Shown here piece after piece: positions 12,601 through 34,453 of a DNA stretch of 64,000 bases. The notes under the pieces were generated by a model. It saw nothing but the letters and a program-made list of their open reading frames with translations, searched no databases and was not told the origin of the DNA. Made by a program: the position numbers and the translations under genes. The stretch is from sequence record MZ475897.1; one strand, 5' to 3'. Position 1 is the first letter of the stretch. Every line of letters starts with the position of its first letter.

Positions 12601-13371
12601 ATGAGCAATATCGATACCACAATGCCTGAAGGCAAATGGGAGTTCAACGAGTCGGTTGCTTGCGTGTTTGATAACATGCTGCAAAACTCCATCCCATCTT
12701 ATGGCCGTATGCGTGACCTGACGTACCGTCTGGGTCGTCGCTTCGTAACTCCCGGTTCAGCTATCGTTGATCTCGGTGCTTCACTTGGCCGAGCTATCGA
12801 ACCGTTTGCAAAAGAGTTCGGCAAGTATGACTACCATCATGCTGCTGACGCGCCGGGCGAAGACTACGAAACAGGCAATCACTATAGCCTGTATGAAGTA
12901 GCTCCTGCTATGCGCGAACGTCTGGTGCAGAATGAAGTGCTCAACTCAGTGAATGCCAAACTGGAAAGTGAATCGCTGGTAGATACTGACACGTTTATGT
13001 TCGACGGTCAGGTGCATTGCTCGTTGATTCTGAGTGTGCTGACTCTCCAGTTCACGCCGATTGAACATCGTCAACACATTCTGGAAAACGTGTACAACTC
13101 ACTGCAACCAGGCGGCGCATTCATCCTCGTTGAGAAGGTGTTAGGTGATAACAACTATCTCGACAAAATGCTGGTGGGCACCTACTACCAGATGAAAGGC
13201 GGTAACGGTTACAGCGCCGAGTCGATTGCGACTAAACGTAAGTCATTGGAAGGCGTACTCGTTCCTGTTAAAGCAGCGTGGAACGAAGAACTGTTGCGTA
13301 AAGCAGGCTTCGGTCAGGTGGAGAGTTTCTACCGCGACCTGAACTTCGCAGGATGGATTGCTATTAAGTAA
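12601..13371 (+). CDS. cmoA: carboxy-S-adenosyl-L-methionine synthase, CmoA family
   Basis: WEFNESVACVFDNMLQNSIPSY, DLGASLG, LTLQF, LQPGGAFILVEK, NGYS..SIATKRKSLE (Arg matching E. coli R199), LRKAGF, NFAG: colinear with E. coli CmoA. Confidence 0.9.
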   Translation: MSNIDTTMPEGKWEFNESVACVFDNMLQNSIPSYGRMRDLTYRLGRRFVTPGSAIVDLGASLGRAIEPFAKEFGKYDYHHAADAPGEDYETGNHYSLYEVAPAMRERLVQNEVLNSVNAKLESESLVDTDTFMFDGQVHCSLILSVLTLQFTPIEHRQHILENVYNSLQPGGAFILVEKVLGDNNYLDKMLVGTYYQMKGGNGYSAESIATKRKSLEGVLVPVKAAWNEELLRKAGFGQVESFYRDLNFAGWIAIK

Positions 13372-13380
13372 GGAAATACT

Positions 13381-14643
13381 ATGAAAGTAAACGGGCGTAT
13401 CTTAGCTATCGTCCCACACAAGACAATGCAAGACCGTACCAAGTCTGGTGTGGGTTCGTACATTGATGGGCTAGAGGCATACGGCTTCTGCGACTTTATC
13501 ACGGACGGAGAGAACAGCTCCGTTACGAAAAGTCAGTGGTTCACTTACGGTGACACTACTCTCAGTGACGGTTATAAGATAGGGCATATCCAGAGCGAGT
13601 TGCTGATTGCACTTGAGCGCCTCCCATACCGTGCGATTATTTGCAGCACGTATGAGGCGATTGAAGCCTGTGTGTCTCTGGGACTGCCAAAGATTATGCC
13701 CGTTTACTATCGCACGCACAACAGCTTTTTGCTCACACAAGATCTCAAGGGTCTTGGTGCAGAGAAGATCCATCGTGCGTTGTTGCAAGCACGCGTCACA
13801 GGGCTGCGCATACTTGCTAACTGTGATTCGACTGCGATCAATCTTACTGAGCGCTATAAGACGCCAGTACACGTTGCCTACAACTCGTTCTCGGTGCCTG
13901 ACTACAACCCACCAGCGCGGCGTGTTCCACAGTTGTTGATTATCTGTCGCTATGAGAAGGTCAAGCGCACGTTGTTTGCTGCGCGTATTGCTGCTGCATC
14001 AGGATTACCCGTTCGTGTTATGACAGGCAGTGATCGTCAAGCACGCAATTGGGAGAAAGAGCTGGCTGAGGCGGGTGTCAAAGAATACACTGTCGTCAGC
14101 GGCCTTAGCGGTAAACAGAAACTCGAATTTATAGGCGCTTGCACAGTAGCCCTTTCTACTGCGAGCGTTGAATCTTTTGCTAACGGTGTGCGTGAGTCTA
14201 TCCCCTACTGTCCTACCTTTATCGTGCAAACATCCAAGTACGATTGGGCTAAGGACTATACGCGCTTCTGTACTGCCGACAAGCATGTTCATATCAGAAC
14301 TGTTGATCGCGTATCAGACCAAGCCGTAGCTGAAATCGGAAGTGAGATAGCGCGAGTTGCTACCACACGTTATCTGACAGGGCCGCAGCGTAAGCAGCTA
14401 CTGACTGCTTGGGCAAAGCAAGTTGATCGTGGTTGGTCCGACTTTGTTCAGAAGGCTGTTGTTGACGATGACGGCAAGCCGCTGCGCACCGAGCTGTATC
14501 AAGAACTGATCGACAAATCAGAAATCGATTGGTCACAAACGCCCACGCTAATGCGTACTGTAAATGCGTTACATAAATGCCACGCTCGTTTGGGCCTGAC
14601 ATTTGATGGCACTAAAATCAAATATAAGAGGAAGCGCAAATGA
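13381..14643 (+). CDS. GT-B fold glycosyltransferase (GT4-like)
   Basis: N-terminal SGVGSY loop, CRYEKVKR donor-binding motif, E-x7-E motif ESFANGVRE. Confidence 0.75.
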   Translation: MKVNGRILAIVPHKTMQDRTKSGVGSYIDGLEAYGFCDFITDGENSSVTKSQWFTYGDTTLSDGYKIGHIQSELLIALERLPYRAIICSTYEAIEACVSLGLPKIMPVYYRTHNSFLLTQDLKGLGAEKIHRALLQARVTGLRILANCDSTAINLTERYKTPVHVAYNSFSVPDYNPPARRVPQLLIICRYEKVKRTLFAARIAAASGLPVRVMTGSDRQARNWEKELAEAGVKEYTVVSGLSGKQKLEFIGACTVALSTASVESFANGVRESIPYCPTFIVQTSKYDWAKDYTRFCTADKHVHIRTVDRVSDQAVAEIGSEIARVATTRYLTGPQRKQLLTAWAKQVDRGWSDFVQKAVVDDDGKPLRTELYQELIDKSEIDWSQTPTLMRTVNALHKCHARLGLTFDGTKIKYKRKRK

Positions 14644-15716
14644 GTGTTATCGGTGATATTTATAACATACCACAACCTTTCGCAATGTATGTCGGGAATT
14701 GTGAGACGCGTGCTCAAGCCAAAGTTGCTGCTGGTACAATCGAGTGGGCGCCAGAGAAAGTGTGCTGCACCGTAGATGATGGTAACAATCTGTTCCCCAA
14801 CGTACCTTCAATCAACCCTGCTGACGTGCATAAGACAGATGCAGAAACTTTAGTGATTGGCTGTGCACCTTTCGGCGGCCGCATTGACGAGCACATGGAC
14901 AAAGCTATTCGTAGCGCTATCTATCGTGGACGCAACATTGCTGCTGCTATGCATACGCGCCTGGCGGATAACCCCGAATACGTTGAGCTGGCCGATCGCT
15001 ACAACGTCAAGCTGTATGACTTCCGTCATCGTCCTGATGCGTACCCACTCGGTACTGGTGAGAAGCGTAGCGGTCTGCGTCTGTTAACTGTCGGTACTGA
15101 TAGCTCCTGCGGCAAGAAGTTTACCACGCTGTCTCTGTATCGTGAACTAAAGCGCATCCACGCAGACACTGTGTTTTGCTCTACTGGTCAAACAGGCTTC
15201 CTGATTAGCGGTTGCGGTATCAACAACGACACGATTGTTGCTGACTTCCTTGCTGGTGCTGCTGAATCCCTTTCGCCTGCAGGTCCTGCTGATCGTATCT
15301 ATCTGATTGAAGGCCAGGGCGCTATCACGCATCCAGCCTACACAGGCGGTAGCATGAGCTTGATTGCTGGCTCTCAGCCTGATCATCTCATCCTGTGCCA
15401 CGCATGGAACCGCCAGAATCAGTTGGGCGTTAAGCGTAAGCCTGACCTTGATTTTGAGATGCGTGCTAACATTGAAGCGGCGCGTATTCACGGTCTCAAC
15501 CCGACCTACATCGGTATCAGCATTAACTTCTCTGAGTGTGATTTGACACAGGATGAGCAAGATAAAATCCTGTACCAACTCGCATCAACGTATGAGATTC
15601 CCGTGTTCGACCCATCACAGGACACTTCTGTGCTGCGTGACCTCGCTCGTATGTTAGCAACTAAAGCCAAAGCAAGGAGCCTCGATGGCCAAGCATCCAC
15701 TGCGCAAGCTGTTTGA
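14640..15716 (+). CDS. DUF1611 family P-loop protein (DgcN-like N-acetyltransferase)
   Basis: VGTDSSCGKKFT, STGQTG, DFLAGAAE, IEGQGAITHPAY, GSQPDHLILCH. Confidence 0.88.
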   Translation: MSVIGDIYNIPQPFAMYVGNCETRAQAKVAAGTIEWAPEKVCCTVDDGNNLFPNVPSINPADVHKTDAETLVIGCAPFGGRIDEHMDKAIRSAIYRGRNIAAAMHTRLADNPEYVELADRYNVKLYDFRHRPDAYPLGTGEKRSGLRLLTVGTDSSCGKKFTTLSLYRELKRIHADTVFCSTGQTGFLISGCGINNDTIVADFLAGAAESLSPAGPADRIYLIEGQGAITHPAYTGGSMSLIAGSQPDHLILCHAWNRQNQLGVKRKPDLDFEMRANIEAARIHGLNPTYIGISINFSECDLTQDEQDKILYQLASTYEIPVFDPSQDTSVLRDLARMLATKAKARSLDGQASTAQAV

Positions 15717-16560
15717 ACAGCATGTGAAAAAAGAAGTGAAAGCAGACAAGGTAGCTGTGCTGCTTTCATCTGGCCTCGATGGTTTAGTCAGTGCGTTAGC
15801 TGCACACGACCTGGGTAAGAAGGTACATGCCTTCACATTCCAAATGGGTGACAACCCTAGCTTCGACAGTCGCCACGCACAGATCGTTGCACAAAAGATG
15901 GGATGGGAGTTCACTCTCGTTAAAGTTCCCACCAGCGTGTCTGCTATCGCGTTAGCGTGGCGCGTGCTGCACTCCAAGTATCGCTGCATCAAGAAGCGTG
16001 ACTATGAATGTGCGTACCCTATGGTCTATTGCTACAAGGCAATCAAAGACGCTGGGTATAAGTATGTGTTAAGCGGGCTGGTGGCCGATGGCTACTTCCT
16101 GTATAACCGTAACACGCACATTCAGAAAATCAGCGGCCCGCACTCTGACGCTCAGAAGTATCATGAGTTCCGTACTCAATACTTTAGTCCGTGGCTTAAA
16201 CACGGTAAGAAGTCTCTGGGCGTTGACGGGTACAACCCGAGCGGTATGTTGCAGCATGAAATGTTGTGCGATAACTTCGGCCTGATTCACGTTAACCCGT
16301 GGATGCAGAACAAGGTGTTTGACTACTTCATCAAATACACTTGGCAGGAGCTGAATCAGCCTAAGCAGAAGATGCCACTAACCGAAGCGTGGGCAGAACA
16401 CATTGCTCTTGTTGGTCATCGCCCACACAGGGGCTATCAGACAGAAGCCAAAGTGCCTGAATACTTTGAGCATCTGATCGATAACCCTGAGATTAACTTT
16501 AACGGGCGCAAGCGCATCATGGACGTGGCACGCGACTGGTCCAAACGAGAGCCTGAATAA
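15685..16560 (+). CDS. asparagine synthetase C-domain-like ATP-dependent amide ligase
   Basis: PP-loop VAVLLSSGLDG, VLSGLVADGYF (compare SGxGADExF), NPW...VFDY; no N-terminal glutaminase domain. Confidence 0.72.
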   Translation: MAKHPLRKLFEQHVKKEVKADKVAVLLSSGLDGLVSALAAHDLGKKVHAFTFQMGDNPSFDSRHAQIVAQKMGWEFTLVKVPTSVSAIALAWRVLHSKYRCIKKRDYECAYPMVYCYKAIKDAGYKYVLSGLVADGYFLYNRNTHIQKISGPHSDAQKYHEFRTQYFSPWLKHGKKSLGVDGYNPSGMLQHEMLCDNFGLIHVNPWMQNKVFDYFIKYTWQELNQPKQKMPLTEAWAEHIALVGHRPHRGYQTEAKVPEYFEHLIDNPEINFNGRKRIMDVARDWSKREPE

Positions 16561-19187: not shown

Positions 19188-19589
19188 ATGAGACCTGAAA
19201 ACATTTCACGCACCTATCGCGTCGGTCAGTCTGACCTGGAGAAAGCACACAATGTCTGCGGAGAGAACAATGTAACACTCTCAGATGTGGTGCGCAGATA
19301 CATCGAAAGAATCGTACTGACTGAGGGTGAGTTCCTTATGAACGAGCGTAAGCACGTACCTGAGTCCCAACTGAATGTACGCCTGCCCTTTTATATTGCG
19401 CACTCCTTTGCATCTGTGTGTAAGTCTCGCGGTACGTTAGCCTCTAAAACCATTCTCAACTTTGTCAAGAATATTGCTCTTTCCGGGACTATCCCTGAGG
19501 AGTTAAAGTATGCTTCTGACGCAGAGTTGCGTGCCTATATTACCTCAGAGCGCTCTCGCCTCGATGCACTGGAAGCAAAACTCAAATGA
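19188..19589 (+). CDS. tandem ribbon-helix-helix-like DNA-binding protein
   Basis: Two RHH-like units (RTYRV...TLSDVVRRYI; QLNVRL...LASKTILNFV). Confidence 0.5.
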   Translation: MRPENISRTYRVGQSDLEKAHNVCGENNVTLSDVVRRYIERIVLTEGEFLMNERKHVPESQLNVRLPFYIAHSFASVCKSRGTLASKTILNFVKNIALSGTIPEELKYASDAELRAYITSERSRLDALEAKLK

Positions 19590-20425
19590 TTCTAACTAGT
19601 CCCATTCGCTATCAGGGTAACAAACGCACTCTGATGCCTCTTATTCTCGAACATGCGCCTGTGAAGGATTGCGTTCGCATGATAGACGCATTCGGTGGTA
19701 GTGGTACTGTTGCGCTCAACATGCCTCACAAGTTTCGCATCTACAATGAACTGAGCACGCCTGTGTTTGAGATCGTCCAGCTGCTTGCGCATCAAGACCC
19801 GAAGAAAACATTGGGTCAGATTAAGCGTATCGTCAAGCGTTTTTGTCTAACCAATAGCAGCCAAGACAACTACGACATGTTCCGTGCGTATGTGCAGAAG
19901 AAGCCAAGTCCGTTGTTCCATTACATCGCACACAGGCACGCACGCTCTAACATGCTGCGCTTCAACCAGAAAGGTATCTACAACGTGCCCTTCGGTGAGC
20001 GTGGCCTGATTGGCAAGTTCGATCAGCTTGAACAGGAGCTGGTGCAGTTCCACGAGCGTATGCAGAACACGCACATCACCAACATGCGCTATAACCTGTT
20101 GCTCAAGTCTGTGTCAAAGCATATCGGACCGAACACGTTCATTTACTTTGACCCTCCATATCTTGCTAGTGGTGCAATGCAGTACGGCAAGTGGACTGAG
20201 CACAACGAGCGCAACCTGTTGTCCGTGCTTGAATATCTGAATCGTCAAGGCTGCCCGTGGATGTTGAGCAACGTTCTCCAACATCGTCATCACACTAACG
20301 ACCTGCTCAAGCGCTGGCTAAAGAAACACGCAACGACTGTCATCTATCCTGACAAGTCTTATTCAATGGCCAACTCTCATTCCGATAGTCACAGCACTAT
20401 CGAGATTCTGGCAATGAACTACTGA
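19586..20425 (+). CDS. dam: DNA adenine methyltransferase, D12/Dam class
   Basis: SPIRYQGNK, DAFGGSG, RFNQKG.YNVPFG, YFDPPY. Confidence 0.9.
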   Translation: MILTSPIRYQGNKRTLMPLILEHAPVKDCVRMIDAFGGSGTVALNMPHKFRIYNELSTPVFEIVQLLAHQDPKKTLGQIKRIVKRFCLTNSSQDNYDMFRAYVQKKPSPLFHYIAHRHARSNMLRFNQKGIYNVPFGERGLIGKFDQLEQELVQFHERMQNTHITNMRYNLLLKSVSKHIGPNTFIYFDPPYLASGAMQYGKWTEHNERNLLSVLEYLNRQGCPWMLSNVLQHRHHTNDLLKRWLKKHATTVIYPDKSYSMANSHSDSHSTIEILAMNY

Positions 20426-31617: not shown

Positions 31618-32316
31618 ATGGCAAAAATTGCTAAAGCAAAGGAAGGGAAAAAGAAAAGCAACCCTATGTTGATTGACCTGAAAAAGTTCAAGTCAGTTAA
31701 ACAGCTTAAGGGTGCGAAGTACAACCCTCGTTTCATTACAGACAGCCGACTGAGAGCGCTCGAAGGTTCTTTGGGCAGCTTCGGCGATTTGTCTGGCGTG
31801 GTGTTCAACAACAGCGTAGACAGTGGCGTGCTGATCTCAGGCCACCAGCGTCTCAAGTCGATTGAGAAGTGGGACTCGCGCATTGAGATTCAGCAAACGT
31901 CTGACAAGTACGGCACGGTAGCGCTGGGTTATATCCATGCCACCAGCGCCAAAGGTAAAACGATCAGCATCCCACTGCGTATCGTTAACTGGTCAGATAA
32001 GAAAGTGGAGTTTGCTGCTAACATTGCTGCGAACGCCCACGGCGGTGAGTTCGATAACAAAAAGCTCGCGTCTCTTGTTGAGAAGCTGGACCTGACTACA
32101 ATCAAGCCAGCTCTTATCGGGCTTGACCCGTTAGAGATTCGCGGCCTGCAACAGACGCTGAGCAAACAAGCTATCGTCGAGCAGGAAAAGCGTGTTGGTA
32201 AAACAACAGGCAAAATGAACGGCAGCACTGGCGAGTTCAAAGAGTACACGACTGATGAAGTTGGTACTGCGCTGACCTGCACCTGCCCACGTTGTGGCTT
32301 TAAGTTCGAGGGATAA
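31618..32316 (+). CDS. ParB/Srx N-terminal domain protein with C-terminal Zn knuckle
   Basis: YNPR.I......L..SL..FG, LISGHQR, ANIAAN..GGEFD, CTCPRCG. Confidence 0.78.
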   Translation: MAKIAKAKEGKKKSNPMLIDLKKFKSVKQLKGAKYNPRFITDSRLRALEGSLGSFGDLSGVVFNNSVDSGVLISGHQRLKSIEKWDSRIEIQQTSDKYGTVALGYIHATSAKGKTISIPLRIVNWSDKKVEFAANIAANAHGGEFDNKKLASLVEKLDLTTIKPALIGLDPLEIRGLQQTLSKQAIVEQEKRVGKTTGKMNGSTGEFKEYTTDEVGTALTCTCPRCGFKFEG

Positions 32317-32317
32317 C

Positions 32318-34453
32318 ATGATCATCAAGCCGCCTACAATGAAAGAGATTAATAAGCTGCCCAAGCCCTGGTCAGGTATGAGTTTCTTTGCAGGTTGCGG
32401 TGGTTCATCTACCGGTCACAAGATGGCCGGTATTAACATCCTACTGAGCAACGAGTTCGTGGACGCGGCTCGTGAATCGTATGAAGCGAACCATCCAACA
32501 ACCAAAGTGTTGCCCCACGATATTCGTCGTCTTGACCCGAAAAAGCTGCTTAGCTATTGCGGCCTGAGTCAGGGCGAACTGGACTTGCTCGACGGCAGTC
32601 CTCCGTGCTTCACCGAAGACACGTTCATTCATACAGACACTGGTATGAAGTTCATCACTGATATGCGCATCGGTGACTTCGCTATGACCTCTGTTGGTAA
32701 GTATCATCCTGTGTATGACACGATGGTACGTCCGTATGATGGTCAGATGCACAGAATTGAAACGCTGCTTGGTCAGAACAATGCAACGCCTGAACATCCG
32801 TTCTTTGTTCGTCGTCAGAGCGAAGAGGGTGGCGGGTACAGTGAGCCGTTCTGGTGTGACGCTAAAGATGTGCAGGAAGGCGATTTGTTGGGTACGCCTC
32901 GTGTTACGCCTGATATGGGTGAAGCACACACGCATGAGATTATCTCGTCGTTGACTGCACAGCTTGTGCGTTGGATTGCATTGCCTGAGTTCTGGTGGCT
33001 GATTGGTCACTGGTGCAATCGCGGTGCAATCGATAAGATTCGTGGTGTCGATGTTATTCAGTTCACCTCGATGACAGCGATGGAAAACTCGCTGGTGGAA
33101 CAAGCGTTCGACGTGCTCAAGTTAAGCAGCATCAATAGCGCTTCGTCCGACATGGGCGTTCATCGTAAGACCGTTCGTGTTGTTATGGACACAGACCTGT
33201 TGCTGTTCTTGCGTATGTTTATCGCACAGGGCAAGAAGTCTATGTCCCGCCGTCTGCCTGGCATGATCTTCCATCTGGCCAAAGAGCTGAAACAGCAATT
33301 CATTCTCGGCTATCTGGGTCGTGATTACGTCACAGCAATGGGCGTTGGTCATGCGTTAGAGGCTGACTCAAAGCGCTTCCTCGTTGAGATGAATTACCTG
33401 TGCTGCTCTGCGTTCAACCGACCGCTGTTCGATGCAATGTTGTTCACTGACTTGCATTACGGCAGTCCTATGTTACCGCCGAGTCGCTTCATCACCAAAG
33501 AGCACATCGGCTTCCTGTTCTTGCAAGAAGAGGTTAATTTCTTCTTCGAGTTCGAGCCGGAAGACCCGCATCTGTGGGTTGAAGTGATTGAGAACTTTAC
33601 GCACCATGAAACGTGCAACGTCTACAACTTCTCAGTCAGTGTTGATGAGACGTATGTTGCCAACGGTATGGTCGTACATAACTGCAAAGGGTTCTCGACT
33701 GCTGGCGTGAAAGAAGACGGCTGGGGCAAAGAGGTTAAGTACAGCGGCAACAAGTATCAGCAAGTCGATGACCTGTTCGATCAGTATTGCCGTATGCTCA
33801 AGCACATGCAGCCTAAAACGTTCACTGCGGAAAACGTTAGTGGCCTCGTTAAAGGTGCGTCGAAGGGTTACTTCATTGAAATCATGAAGACCTTTGATCA
33901 GCTGGGCTACTATGTGCGAGCGCCGTTGCTTAATGCTGCGTGGCTTGGTGTGCCTCAGTCTCGTGAGCGTATCATCTTTATGGGTGTGCGCAAAGACGTG
34001 GCGAAAGCACTCGGCTATAAAACTGCGTTGACTGCTGTGCCTGATGTAACACCTCAATCAAGCATGGCGTTCCTTGCAGATGCATTGCCGAACATTCGTC
34101 GCTATAAAGGTACGGAGCGTGACATTATCAAGTATCTGCCTGCTGTTAACGGCCCGATGCCTACGATTACCGCTGCTGATGCTATCGCATACGAAACAGC
34201 ACGCTTCTCCTCTGCTGGCTTCATTGAAGACGACAAAGGGCACAGACGCAAGCTGACGATTGACGAACTCAAAGTTGTGTCAGGCATGCCTAGTGATTAC
34301 GTGCTCACAGGTAAGTTTGAAGAACAATGGGAACGTCTCGGTCGTGTGTGCGTACCTGCAATGACGTGTGCTGCGGCAAGCGCGTTGATACGCCATGTGC
34401 TTGAGCCTTACGCGAAGCTGCGTAAAAAGAAACCTGGGGATCGTTTTCGTTAA
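32318..34453 (+). CDS. C5 cytosine DNA methyltransferase homologue, intein-containing; predicted carboxymethyltransferase
   Basis: Motif I FFAGCGG, IV GSPP/CKGFS, VI ENVSGL, VIII QSRER, IX RKLTIDE, X reads LGRVC instead of xGN[AS]V; start ATG 32318. Confidence 0.88.
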   Translation: MIIKPPTMKEINKLPKPWSGMSFFAGCGGSSTGHKMAGINILLSNEFVDAARESYEANHPTTKVLPHDIRRLDPKKLLSYCGLSQGELDLLDGSPPCFTEDTFIHTDTGMKFITDMRIGDFAMTSVGKYHPVYDTMVRPYDGQMHRIETLLGQNNATPEHPFFVRRQSEEGGGYSEPFWCDAKDVQEGDLLGTPRVTPDMGEAHTHEIISSLTAQLVRWIALPEFWWLIGHWCNRGAIDKIRGVDVIQFTSMTAMENSLVEQAFDVLKLSSINSASSDMGVHRKTVRVVMDTDLLLFLRMFIAQGKKSMSRRLPGMIFHLAKELKQQFILGYLGRDYVTAMGVGHALEADSKRFLVEMNYLCCSAFNRPLFDAMLFTDLHYGSPMLPPSRFITKEHIGFLFLQEEVNFFFEFEPEDPHLWVEVIENFTHHETCNVYNFSVSVDETYVANGMVVHNCKGFSTAGVKEDGWGKEVKYSGNKYQQVDDLFDQYCRMLKHMQPKTFTAENVSGLVKGASKGYFIEIMKTFDQLGYYVRAPLLNAAWLGVPQSRERIIFMGVRKDVAKALGYKTALTAVPDVTPQSSMAFLADALPNIRRYKGTERDIIKYLPAVNGPMPTITAADAIAYETARFSSAGFIEDDKGHRRKLTIDELKVVSGMPSDYVLTGKFEEQWERLGRVCVPAMTCAAASALIRHVLEPYAKLRKKKPGDRFR
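32606..33682 (+). mobile_element. intein (359 aa) with degenerate LAGLIDADG region
   Basis: Begins CFTEDT, block B ATPEHPF, ends YVANGMVVHN followed by Cys+1; remnants WWLIGHWCNRG and FILGYLGRD. Confidence 0.9.

Follow-up and report, generated by a model that had tools for sequence, protein, structure and literature searches.

A predicted intein-containing CmoX-type DNA cytosine C5-carboxymethyltransferase in the Erwinia jumbo phage pEa_SNUABM_21

The cmoX locus and its features

The gene analyzed here is found in the jumbo phage Erwinia phage pEa_SNUABM_21 (MZ475897.1), in a window, i.e., the whole stretch of DNA that was analyzed, of 64,000 nucleotides. Its open reading frame (ORF), 32294..34453, was assigned to the DNA cytosine C5-methyltransferases (C5-MTases) by the PF00145 (6.3e-38) and TIGR00675 (8.4e-35) models, and is compared throughout with the natural phage DNA C5-carboxymethyltransferases (CmoX), which were published with the crystal structure 8YF3 in December 2025 (PMC12783734). 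The residues are numbered from the mechanical ORF, which starts at the GTG of position 32294 and has 719 aa, and the start codon of the RefSeq relative is the ATG equivalent to position 32318. The features of the gene and its immediate upstream neighbor are as follows:

31618..32316, + strand: ParB-like gene directly upstream of cmoX (PHROG 620, "ParB-like partition protein", 2.3e-31)
32318..34453, + strand: predicted CmoX precursor gene, 711 aa from the ATG at 32318 (ORF list, PF00145 and intein models)
32294..32605, + strand: N-extein, aa 1-104, with motif I, the predicted adenine and ribose contacts of carboxy-SAM (Cx-SAM; F32, E54, F55, D76), and the GSPP of motif IV
32387-32404, + strand: motif I, FAGCGG, aa 32-37, by residue location in the ORF
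32606..33682, + strand: predicted intein, 359 aa, aa 105-463, with Cys1 (CFTEDT), block B TPEHPF, and a C-terminal VVHN followed by the +1 Cys, and with a central homing-endonuclease-like domain
33683..34453, + strand: C-extein, aa 464-719, with the catalytic Cys464 (CKGFSTAG), motifs VI, VIII, IX and X, and the target recognition region
33830-33838, + strand: motif VI, ENV, aa 513-515, a conserved column
33956-33970, + strand: motif VIII, QSRER, aa 555-559, a conserved column
34247-34300, + strand: motif IX, R652..D668, conserved columns
34340..34345, + strand: motif X Gly683-Arg684 (GGT CGT), codons 683 and 684 of the ORF

The arginine of motif X

The initial annotation had pointed to a GGT CGT at 34340-34345, which the sequence confirms, as these codons encode the G683-R684 of the ORF. 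The peptide quoted with it, EQWERLGRVCVP, is also real, but it spans 34322-34357, and the range given for it, 34331-34360, begins three codons inside. Similarly, motifs I, IV, VI, VIII and IX had all been described as intact, which is the case for I, VI, VIII and IX, whereas motif IV would be contiguous only after splicing, given that the intein lies at the catalytic Cys.

In SpCmoX, the enzyme of the Synechococcus phage S-B43, Arg350 replaces the Asn304 of M.HhaI, and the 8YF3 structure, at 1.9 A, has this Arg350 in direct contact with the carboxymethyl group/carboxylate of the bound Cx-SAM, which is the only cofactor that the wild-type enzyme takes (PMC12783734). The idea that an Arg in motif X denotes a carboxymethyltransferase is, then, already published (PMC12783734). 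In an ungapped block of 55 residues (HMMER), R684 falls on the R350 of 8YF3, and the same pairing is found in the MAFFT alignment, so that R684 stands where M.HhaI has Asn304, SpCmoX has Arg350, and M.MpeI has Asn374. On the other hand, the switch to methylation that had been expected of an R-to-N revertant is improbable, because the published R350N mutant of SpCmoX took neither SAM nor Cx-SAM (PMC12783734).

The Arg occupies the R684 column in 117 of the 120 best intein-free homologues, and is also present in the enzymes of the phages Y3, Yoloswag, PaBG, TurkishDelight, Mcat8 and S-B43, which argues against a chance substitution. The SPPC string, which was used as the filter for CmoX candidates in PMC12783734 (5,615 candidates), is found in all 120 of these homologues. 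In the same set, the three homologues with GN in motif X all have PCQ, while PC[A/C/S/K] is found in 115 of the 117 with GR, and the enzyme of phage CL131 has the canonical GN/PCQ pairing. These alignments indicate that the motif X Arg is an ancestral trait of the family, which co-varies with the loss of the PCQ glutamine. Given this, the earlier description of the Arg as a targeted change rather than decay stands only in its second half, as decay is ruled out by the conservation of the residue and the dN/dS values (see below), but the Arg is shared by a large family, in which it is conserved, and is not a local change.

Similarity to SpCmoX

The closest PDB sequence match of both exteins is 8YF3, at 5.8e-33 for the C-extein (M.HaeIII, 3.4e-12) and at 1.3e-19 for the N-extein (M.HaeIII, 1.2e-4), where aa 27-103 align without gaps to residues 20-96 of 8YF3 (E 1.3e-19). 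The same structure is the top Foldseek match of the AF2 model (E 5.7e-16, TMt 0.76), which also matches M.HhaI and M.HaeIII. The exteins were joined in a script for the mapping of columns only, and the database and structure searches took either the pieces or the unaltered precursor.

At the level of individual residues, F32, E54, F55 and D76 of the pocket pair with F25, E47, F48 and D69 of SpCmoX, all identical, and the S102-P104 and C464 of the catalytic loop pair with S95-P97 and C98, in a protein that is ~31% identical to SpCmoX over the C-extein. Membership of the pEa_SNUABM_21 ORF in the CmoX family is thus supported at the sequence level. The contact between the Arg and the Cx-SAM carboxylate, and the natural carboxymethyltransferase that the initial annotation had proposed from it, gain support from this homology (R684 = R350) and from the presence of cmoA and cmoY in the window, and both remain predictions for the phage enzyme.

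The residue that follows the catalytic Cys is a Lys in the pEa_SNUABM_21 enzyme and a Ser in SpCmoX, which means that the two pockets are not identical. This Lys would be in line with a dual use of cofactors, in which a mixture of 5mC and 5cxmC would be set by the Cx-SAM:SAM ratio through CmoA, as would the engineered M.MedI N377K and M.MpeI N374K, which use both cofactors, and some use of SAM is conceivable because these Asn-to-Lys enzymes keep methylation (PMC12015181). Even so, dual use is improbable, given that SpCmoX is reported to be selective for Cx-SAM, and that all of the contact residues named for it are also found in the phage enzyme. The target recognition region also differs in length from that of SpCmoX, so the specificity is not transferable; the segment that separates motif VIII from motif IX is shorter as well as different, and the GC specificity of SpCmoX should therefore not be assumed for the phage enzyme.

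An intein at the catalytic cysteine

Motif IV of the ORF is split, with the GSPP at aa 101-104 being followed by an insert of 359 aa and then by the CKGFSTAG from aa 464, and the "SPPC" string of the precursor borrows Cys105, which is the first residue of the insert. The spliced product would read GSPPCKGFS, the string found in eight intein-free homologues. PaBG, SpCmoX and the 120 homologues lack the insert, and their sequence at the site is GSPPC[K/A/S/C].FS.

The splice-junction residues, C105, T165-P-E-H168 (TPEHPF), H462-N463 and C464, are kept in Y3 and Yoloswag, i.e., in three lineages, the inteins of which are only ~40% identical. The TIGR01443 model matched the insert at 17.2 bits, above its cutoff of 15.6, while PF14890 and PF13403 remained below their gathering thresholds; related inteins are found in thymidylate synthases and in another C5-MTase, with PF14890 and PF14528 matched in the relatives. 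The Foldseek matches of the predicted fold are the TliVMA intein (7qsu, E 1.1e-11, TMt 0.69), PI-SceI and PI-PfuI, with HINT and homing endonuclease domains. No PDB entry was matched when the intein was searched by sequence, and the identification therefore rests on the homologues, the junction residues and the predicted fold, which indicate that the insert is a class 1 intein with a homing-endonuclease domain, whose splicing is predicted. Given that this intein separates the GSPP from the catalytic Cys, CmoX would have to splice in order to work.

The alternative of a dead gene, in which the insert stays unspliced and the precursor survives as an inactive relic or only to carry the intein, might draw on the Pfam scores below the threshold and on the LAGLIDADG-like strings, which look degenerate on inspection by eye. 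It is extremely improbable, in view of the absence of any stop or frameshift in the ~20 intein-bearing clusters, the retention of the splice residues across such divergent inteins, and the strong purifying selection on the exteins (dN/dS ~0.12 in both), which have one difference in 1059 nt among close relatives. The intein is also under purifying selection, with a dN/dS of 0.15-0.24.

The inteins of pEa_SNUABM_21 and pEa_SNUABM_7 have 30 differences in 1077 nt, where the regional mean is 116 in 8001 nt. Recent homing was considered on the basis of this divergence, and was set aside, as the value is only ~2x the regional mean.

In the literature on inteins in phage cytosine methyltransferases, no description of the pEa_SNUABM_21 case was found, and in the PaBG paper the only inteins reported are those of terminases. 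In the main text and the supplements searched of PMC12783734, no mention of Erwinia, Dickeya, PaBG, Yoloswag or an intein was found.

Partner genes in the window

Four other genes of the window lie at some distance from cmoX, and two of them, cmoA and cmoY, would provide the Cx-SAM and the later amidation:

12601..13371, + strand: CmoA-like carboxy-SAM synthase, 256 aa (TIGR00740 6.6e-39, below the equivalog cutoff, 134 vs 193 bits)
13381..14643, + strand: GT-B fold glycosyltransferase-like gene between cmoA and cmoY, 420 aa (predicted fold; possible accessory, putative role)
14640..15716, + strand: DUF1611/DgcN-like gene between cmoA and cmoY (PF07755 7.5e-47 and PF17396; possible accessory, putative role)
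15685..16560, + strand: CmoY-like ATP-dependent amide ligase, 291 aa (PF00733 1.8e-13)

The best PDB matches of the CmoA-like protein are the E. coli CmoA (4gek/4iwn) and YecO (1im8), at 5e-28, followed by generic MTases at 2e-5, and its full-length identity to the assayed SpCmoA is 28%. The CmoY-like ligase has only the PP-loop domain of asparagine synthase, without the glutaminase domain, and is 33% identical to the assayed SpCmoY, also over its full length (E 2e-50). Such AMP-forming amide ligases are frequent, although not obligatory, associates of CmoX, as are ParBc (PF02195) neighbors (PMC12783734). The ParB-like ORF upstream of cmoX matched only the PHROGs, with no Pfam family at E<=0.01, and the same ParB-CmoX adjacency is found in Y3, Yoloswag, PaBG and TurkishDelight.

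The 420-aa ORF, which matched nothing in Pfam, NCBIfam or PHROGs, gave a marginal result in the profile search against the PDB (E 0.011), and its AF2 model (pLDDT 77) had GT-B glycosyltransferases in all of the top 50 Foldseek matches, which is consistent with a GT-B fold; one of its homologues carries PF00534. The DUF1611 gene matched NF041892 (DgcN) at 2.9e-85, below the cutoff.

The CmoX-like and CmoA-like genes are found in the same groups of phages, with 48 Erwinia and two Dickeya records in each search, and both genes are also found in PaBG, S-B43, S-CRM01 and TurkishDelight. A CmoA-like MTase, an asparagine synthase, a ParB-like protein and a C5-MTase have been listed as common to the phages AD1 and Y3, and missing from their sister phage JA11 (PMC6143709, Table 5). 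The DUF1611 gene is found in the phage collection only in 34 records of Erwinia/Dickeya jumbo phages, in which it follows cmoA at a distance of no more than 2 kb wherever the match positions of both are listed, and it abuts the asparagine synthase gene in AD1. Phage Y3 is without both the glycosyltransferase and the DUF1611 genes, and its cmoA abuts the ligase gene.

This distribution bears on the alternative of an ordinary SAM-dependent 5-methylcytosine methyltransferase, in which the Arg of motif X would be tolerated with no effect on the cofactor. Such an enzyme would have the C5-MTase catalytic motifs, all of which are present, and SAM-dependent methylation persists in the engineered Asn-to-Lys enzymes (PMC12015181). 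However, wild-type SpCmoX, which shares this Arg and the residues of the pocket, took Cx-SAM alone, the Arg co-varies with both the loss of the PCQ Gln and the presence of cmoA in the phage genomes, and a Cx-SAM synthase beside a CmoY homologue has no other evident use for the phage, all of which makes an ordinary methyltransferase very improbable.

Comparison with known systems

The pEa_SNUABM_21 system resembles that of SpCmoX in its C5-MTase fold and motifs, the SPPC loop (here the predicted product of splicing), the motif X Arg, the identical Cx-SAM contacts, and the phage-encoded CmoA and asparagine-synthase-like CmoY, and differs from it in the 359-aa intein at the catalytic Cys. The arrangement of the genes is also different, given that cmoA and cmoY lie beside cmoX in S-B43, whereas the pEa_SNUABM_21 pair is 16-19 kb away (19 kb in the case of cmoA), with two extra genes between them and the ParB-like gene upstream of cmoX.

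The engineered M.MpeI N374K and M.MedI N377K share a positive side chain at the position of the motif X Asn, and this side chain pairs with the Cx-SAM carboxylate, which leads to the carboxymethylation of cytosine at C5 (PMC12015181). These enzymes differ in having a Lys rather than an Arg, in being CpG methyltransferases mutated in the laboratory, which keep the PCQ and retain SAM methylation, and in having no CmoA or CmoY partner genes. M.HhaI and M.HaeIII, which form a second group of matches below 8YF3, by sequence as well as by fold, have the same fold and order of motifs, I-X, but their motif X has GN, their motif IV has PCQ, and their cofactor is SAM.

The intein, in turn, shares with PI-SceI, TliVMA and PI-PfuI the Cys1, the block B TxxH, the terminal His-Asn, the +1 Cys, insertion at a catalytic site, and the predicted HINT and endonuclease fold, although it has no detectable sequence similarity to the solved inteins, and its host protein here is a CmoX. 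A further parallel is provided by CmoB, the tRNA U34 carboxymethyltransferase, which uses the Cx-SAM made by CmoA, and in which an Arg has been proposed to recognize the carboxymethyl group (cited in PMC12783734). CmoB differs in having an RNA substrate and in belonging to another methyltransferase family.

Proposed mechanism

Taken with the genomic context, the product of the ORF is probably a DNA cytosine C5-carboxymethyltransferase of the CmoX type, synthesized as a precursor that contains an intein, a prediction that we hold with considerable confidence. The intein would excise itself and join the GSPP to Cys464, which would form the contiguous SPPC catalytic loop and make this one residue both the +1 splice nucleophile and the catalytic thiol. 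The phage CmoA-like enzyme, and possibly also the host CmoA, would convert SAM and prephenate to Cx-SAM, which the spliced enzyme would bind, with Arg684 pairing with the extra carboxylate. The target cytosine would then be flipped out and attacked at C6 by Cys464, and the carboxymethyl group would be transferred to C5, giving rise to 5-carboxymethylcytosine in the phage DNA. The CmoY-like ligase may subsequently amidate the carboxylate with ATP, using either glycine or another amine, and the likely benefit would be that the phage DNA is shielded against restriction by the host. For SpCmoX, both 5cxmC and 5gcxmC have been shown as products (PMC12783734); as regards the splicing, activity, target sequence and final product of the pEa_SNUABM_21 enzyme itself, the above is what we infer from this analysis.

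A more elaborate scheme, which is possible but rather doubtful, is that the 5-carboxymethylcytosine serves as a handle that is built into an undescribed hypermodified base, with the GT-B and DUF1611/DgcN-like genes inside the cmoA-cmoY operon extending or altering the amide adduct beyond the glycine amide, and with the activity of CmoX being also gated by splicing. Gating of this type may follow from the position of the intein at the catalytic cysteine.

Significance

With the predicted CmoX of pEa_SNUABM_21, the CmoA-CmoX-CmoY pathway of cytosine carboxymethylation, known from a cyanophage, would reach a large clade of Erwinia amylovora and Dickeya phages of ~260 kb. Enzymology would gain a second, divergent CmoX, in which a Lys comes after the catalytic Cys and the target recognition region is different, which also bears on the search for carboxymethyltransferases of new sequence specificity, for use in methylation-sequencing chemistry. 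It would also be a clean example from nature of a splice nucleophile and an active-site thiol that are one and the same residue. The two extra genes of the operon hint at a further, possibly new cytosine adduct. Finally, the Erwinia amylovora and Dickeya phages are isolated for biocontrol, and modified DNA would affect their sensitivity to restriction, their sequencing, and their host range.

The probable cmoX gene and its relation to SpCmoX

The window corresponds to positions 1-64000 of pEa_SNUABM_21 (MZ475897.1), a jumbo phage of 265 kb whose host is Erwinia amylovora, at 100% identity and with the same coordinates. Two features are central, with residues numbered from the GTG start:

32294-34453, + strand: cmoX, 719 aa from GTG
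32606-33682, + strand: intein within cmoX, 359 aa (aa 105-463), placed by alignment with interrupted and uninterrupted orthologues

The first codons (32294-32317) overlap the 3' end of the ParB-like gene (31618-32316), and the equivalent of the ATG at 32318 is the annotated start in the RefSeq sister phage pEa_SNUABM_7, which gives 711 aa and lowers each residue number by 8. The product is a homologue of the C5 cytosine methyltransferases (PF00145, 6.3e-38; TIGR00675, 8.4e-35). The Gly-Arg pair read in motif X by the initial annotation was confirmed as GGT CGT at 34340-34345 (codons 683 and 684), and the peptide that it quoted is correct, spanning 34322-34357.

In December 2025, CmoX of Synechococcus phage S-B43 (SpCmoX) was described as a C5 methyltransferase homologue that uses carboxy-SAM (Cx-SAM) to form 5-carboxymethylcytosine, and in its structure (8YF3, 1.9 A) Arg350 occupies the position of Asn304 in M.HhaI, in direct contact with the carboxymethyl group of Cx-SAM, the sole cofactor accepted by the wild-type enzyme (PMC12783734). 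In everything that sequence comparison can test, the window protein agrees with SpCmoX. Among PDB entries, 8YF3 ranks first for both the C-extein (5.8e-33, followed by M.HaeIII at 3.4e-12) and the N-extein (1.3e-19, the second match being at 1.2e-4), and it also ranks first in fold comparison with the precursor model (E 5.7e-16, TMt 0.76). An alignment block of 55 residues without gaps pairs R684 with R350 (ERLGRVCVP versus ERVGRMVPP), and the adenine, ribose and catalytic residues named in the paper are all identical, with F25, E47, F48, D69, S95-P97 and C98 of SpCmoX corresponding to F32, E54, F55, D76, S102-P104 and C464. By this homology, the earlier proposal, made from the sequence only, that the Arg contacts the Cx-SAM carboxylate, making the protein a natural carboxymethyltransferase, would be right. 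The R-to-N revertant proposed to switch to methylation is contradicted by SpCmoX R350N, which accepts neither SAM nor Cx-SAM (PMC12783734).

Covariation of motif X with motif IV

Among the best 120 intein-free homologues, the motif X position is Arg in 117 and Asn in 3, and the residue following the catalytic Cys co-varies with it, being that of the canonical PCQ in 3/3 GN homologues, and Ala, Cys, Ser or Lys in 115/117 GR homologues. The same pairing is found in cultured phages.

Motif IV, motif X and phage cmoA in cultured phages
TurkishDelight: SPPCA, GR; cmoA present, with ParB and an AsnB-like gene
PaBG: SPPCK, GR; cmoA present
Moraxella Mcat8: SPPCS, GR; cmoA absent
Aphanizomenon CL131: SPPCQ, GN; cmoA absent

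Given that the two motifs co-vary, these sequences suggest that the cofactor switch took more than one residue, which fits the published dead R350N (PMC12783734).

Three homologues (P0064, P0074 and P0110), ~40% identical to the C-extein, combine GN in motif X with PCQ in motif IV, and are likely to be ordinary methyltransferases nested among CmoX-like sequences, useful for reconstructing the origin of the cofactor switch. The C5 methyltransferase homologue of Flavobacterium phage Fpv5 (locus L009, 304-1371) has SPPCS in motif IV, and its motif X reads Gly-Met (LIGMSVPP), with Met where the others have Asn or Arg; Flavobacterium phages of this type (32 records) yielded no cmoA-like gene.

An intein at the catalytic cysteine

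The PF00145 match of the cmoX product is split into two stretches, with intein-model matches between them, and the precursor junctions read ...LDLLDGSPP / CFTEDTFIHT...TPEHPF...VANGMVVHN / CKGFSTAG... The precursor was aligned with its orthologues from two Erwinia phages, Y3 (709 aa) and Yoloswag (702 aa), and with two enzymes that lack the insert, from Pseudomonas phage PaBG (335 aa) and from S-B43 (372 aa). In this alignment the insert, which the initial annotation does not mention, falls exactly between GSPP and the motif IV Cys. SPPC runs across this point in 120/120 of the best intein-free homologues, and GSPPCKGFS, the junction expected after splicing, occurs in 8/120. All of the class 1 hallmarks (Cys1, block B TxxH, terminal His-Asn and +1 Cys) are carried by the insert, and are kept across lineages whose inserts are only ~40% identical.

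Searches with the insert only returned ~20 clusters of intein-bearing methyltransferases (699-711 aa) and, more distantly, inteins within thymidylate synthases and another C5 methyltransferase; none of the solved inteins has sequence similarity to it. AlphaFold2 predicts the precursor with a mean pLDDT of 84.5, which drops only at the junctions; after the CmoX structure, the best matches of this model are homing-endonuclease-associated inteins, namely TliVMA (7qsu, TMt 0.69), PI-SceI, PhoVMA and PI-PfuI. Given the position of the insert, exactly before the motif IV Cys, Cys464 would be at once the +1 splice nucleophile and the catalytic thiol of the transferase, and the unspliced precursor is predicted to be incapable of activity. 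No report of an intein at this catalytic cysteine was found in the literature.

A dead gene that does not splice is contradicted by the conservation of both cmoX and the intein, which is present in the Y3, Yoloswag and pEa_SNUABM_7 orthologues (the Erwinia jumbo phages examined). The dN/dS of ~0.12 for the exteins and 0.15-0.24 for the intein, rough values given that dS is saturated for distant pairs, indicates purifying selection on both.

Between the close relatives pEa_SNUABM_21 and pEa_SNUABM_7 (locus L001), the exteins differ at 1/1059 nt and the intein at 30/1077 nt (27 synonymous), the regional mean being 116/8001 nt, which could result from intein exchange or from strong extein constraint. 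The LAGLIDADG-like strings of the intein (FWWLIGHWCNRG and FILGYLGRDY) look degenerate, and its endonuclease may therefore be inactive.

Partner genes

In the S-B43 system, Cx-SAM is provided by the phage CmoA, and CmoY, an asparagine-synthase-like ligase, attaches glycine to the carboxylate thus introduced; the signature "SPPC" plus R350 yielded 5,615 candidates, which are frequently located near CmoA, a ligase and a ParBc-domain protein (PMC12783734). The window has the following candidate counterparts:

12601-13371: CmoA-like (TIGR00740, 6.6e-39, below the equivalog cutoff)
15685-16560: CmoY-like ligase, 291 aa, asparagine-synthase PP-loop domain only
31618-32316: ParB-like, directly upstream of cmoX (PHROGs, 2.3e-31; no Pfam match)

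The PDB proteins closest to the CmoA-like protein, which is 28% identical to the assayed SpCmoA, are CmoA of E. coli and YecO of H. influenzae (~1e-25 to 5e-28); generic methyltransferases follow only at 2e-5. The CmoY-like protein is 33% identical to the assayed SpCmoY over its full length (E 2e-50). The ParB-CmoX pair is also found in Y3, Yoloswag, PaBG and TurkishDelight. Within the phage collection, a search for CmoX-like genes matched jumbo-phage records of 48 Erwinia and 2 Dickeya phages, as did a search for CmoA-like genes; PaBG, S-B43, S-CRM01 and TurkishDelight also have both.

Table 5 of PMC6143709 presents genes common to Dickeya phage AD1 and Erwinia phage Y3 that are missing in the sister phage JA11, a set with methyltransferase AD1_016, an asparagine synthase, a ParB-like "repressor", a cytosine methyltransferase and a radical SAM protein. 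AD1_016 can be recognised as the CmoA-like gene by its position, directly ahead of AD1_017, the DUF1611 gene, and the joint presence or absence in these three phages links the cmoX and cmoA/cmoY loci, which lie 16-19 kb apart. Given this linkage to cmoA, the covariation of motifs IV and X, and the selectivity of SpCmoX for Cx-SAM, a plain SAM-dependent methyltransferase is unlikely. The use of both SAM and Cx-SAM is possible, as engineered Asn-to-Lys enzymes retain methylation activity.

Streptomyces phage TurkishDelight (locus L011, 1038-6066) has a compact cluster of ParB, ParB, CmoX-like (SPPCA, GR), Asn-synthase-like and CmoA-like genes. Its Asn-synthase-like gene carries a glutamine amidotransferase domain, and the locus appears to exemplify the ammonia-using ligase class, for which expression was not achieved in the CmoX paper (PMC12783734).

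Two further genes sit between cmoA and cmoY:

13381-15716: a gene for a 420-aa protein of GT-B fold (predicted fold only), then, before cmoY, a DUF1611/DgcN-like gene (PF07755, 7.5e-47; PDB 7xrj, 3.6e-50)

The 420-aa protein has no family match in Pfam, NCBIfam or PHROGs and only seven homologue clusters, and the best 50 fold matches of its model (pLDDT 77) are all GT-B glycosyltransferases, including one or more from phages. The DUF1611 gene occurs, within the phage collection, only in 34 Erwinia/Dickeya jumbo-phage records, and lies <=2 kb after cmoA wherever both match positions are listed. Phage Y3 is without both genes, the ligase following cmoA directly, whereas AD1-type phages appear to have the DUF1611 gene only. 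The placement of both genes within the cmoA-cmoY operon suggests that they may have the modified base as their substrate.

In this early region, a second gene for DNA modification encodes a Dam-family N6-adenine methyltransferase (19586-20425; PF02086, 2.1e-25; TIGR00571, 8.6e-33, just under the cutoff).

Proposed pathway and significance

In the scheme proposed here, which infers that the window protein splices and is active, and infers its target sequence and its final adduct too, the precursor would splice itself and the phage CmoA would supply Cx-SAM, to which the host CmoA may add, as has precedent in E. coli (PMC12783734). The spliced enzyme would carboxymethylate C5 of the target cytosines, with Arg684 holding the cofactor carboxylate, the CmoY-like ligase would then amidate the carboxymethyl product, and the two extra genes might elaborate it further.

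Enzymes of this kind, the part played by their Arg and the pathway itself have already been published (PMC12783734). The window protein is a further CmoX member, in a phage clade beyond those named in that paper, given that neither PMC12783734 nor its searched supplements mention the Erwinia/Dickeya jumbo phages. Two features of the window are additional to what that paper describes: the intein next to the catalytic Cys, and the glycosyltransferase/DUF1611 cassette within the cmoA-cmoY operon, which may provide an accessory step in cytosine hypermodification.
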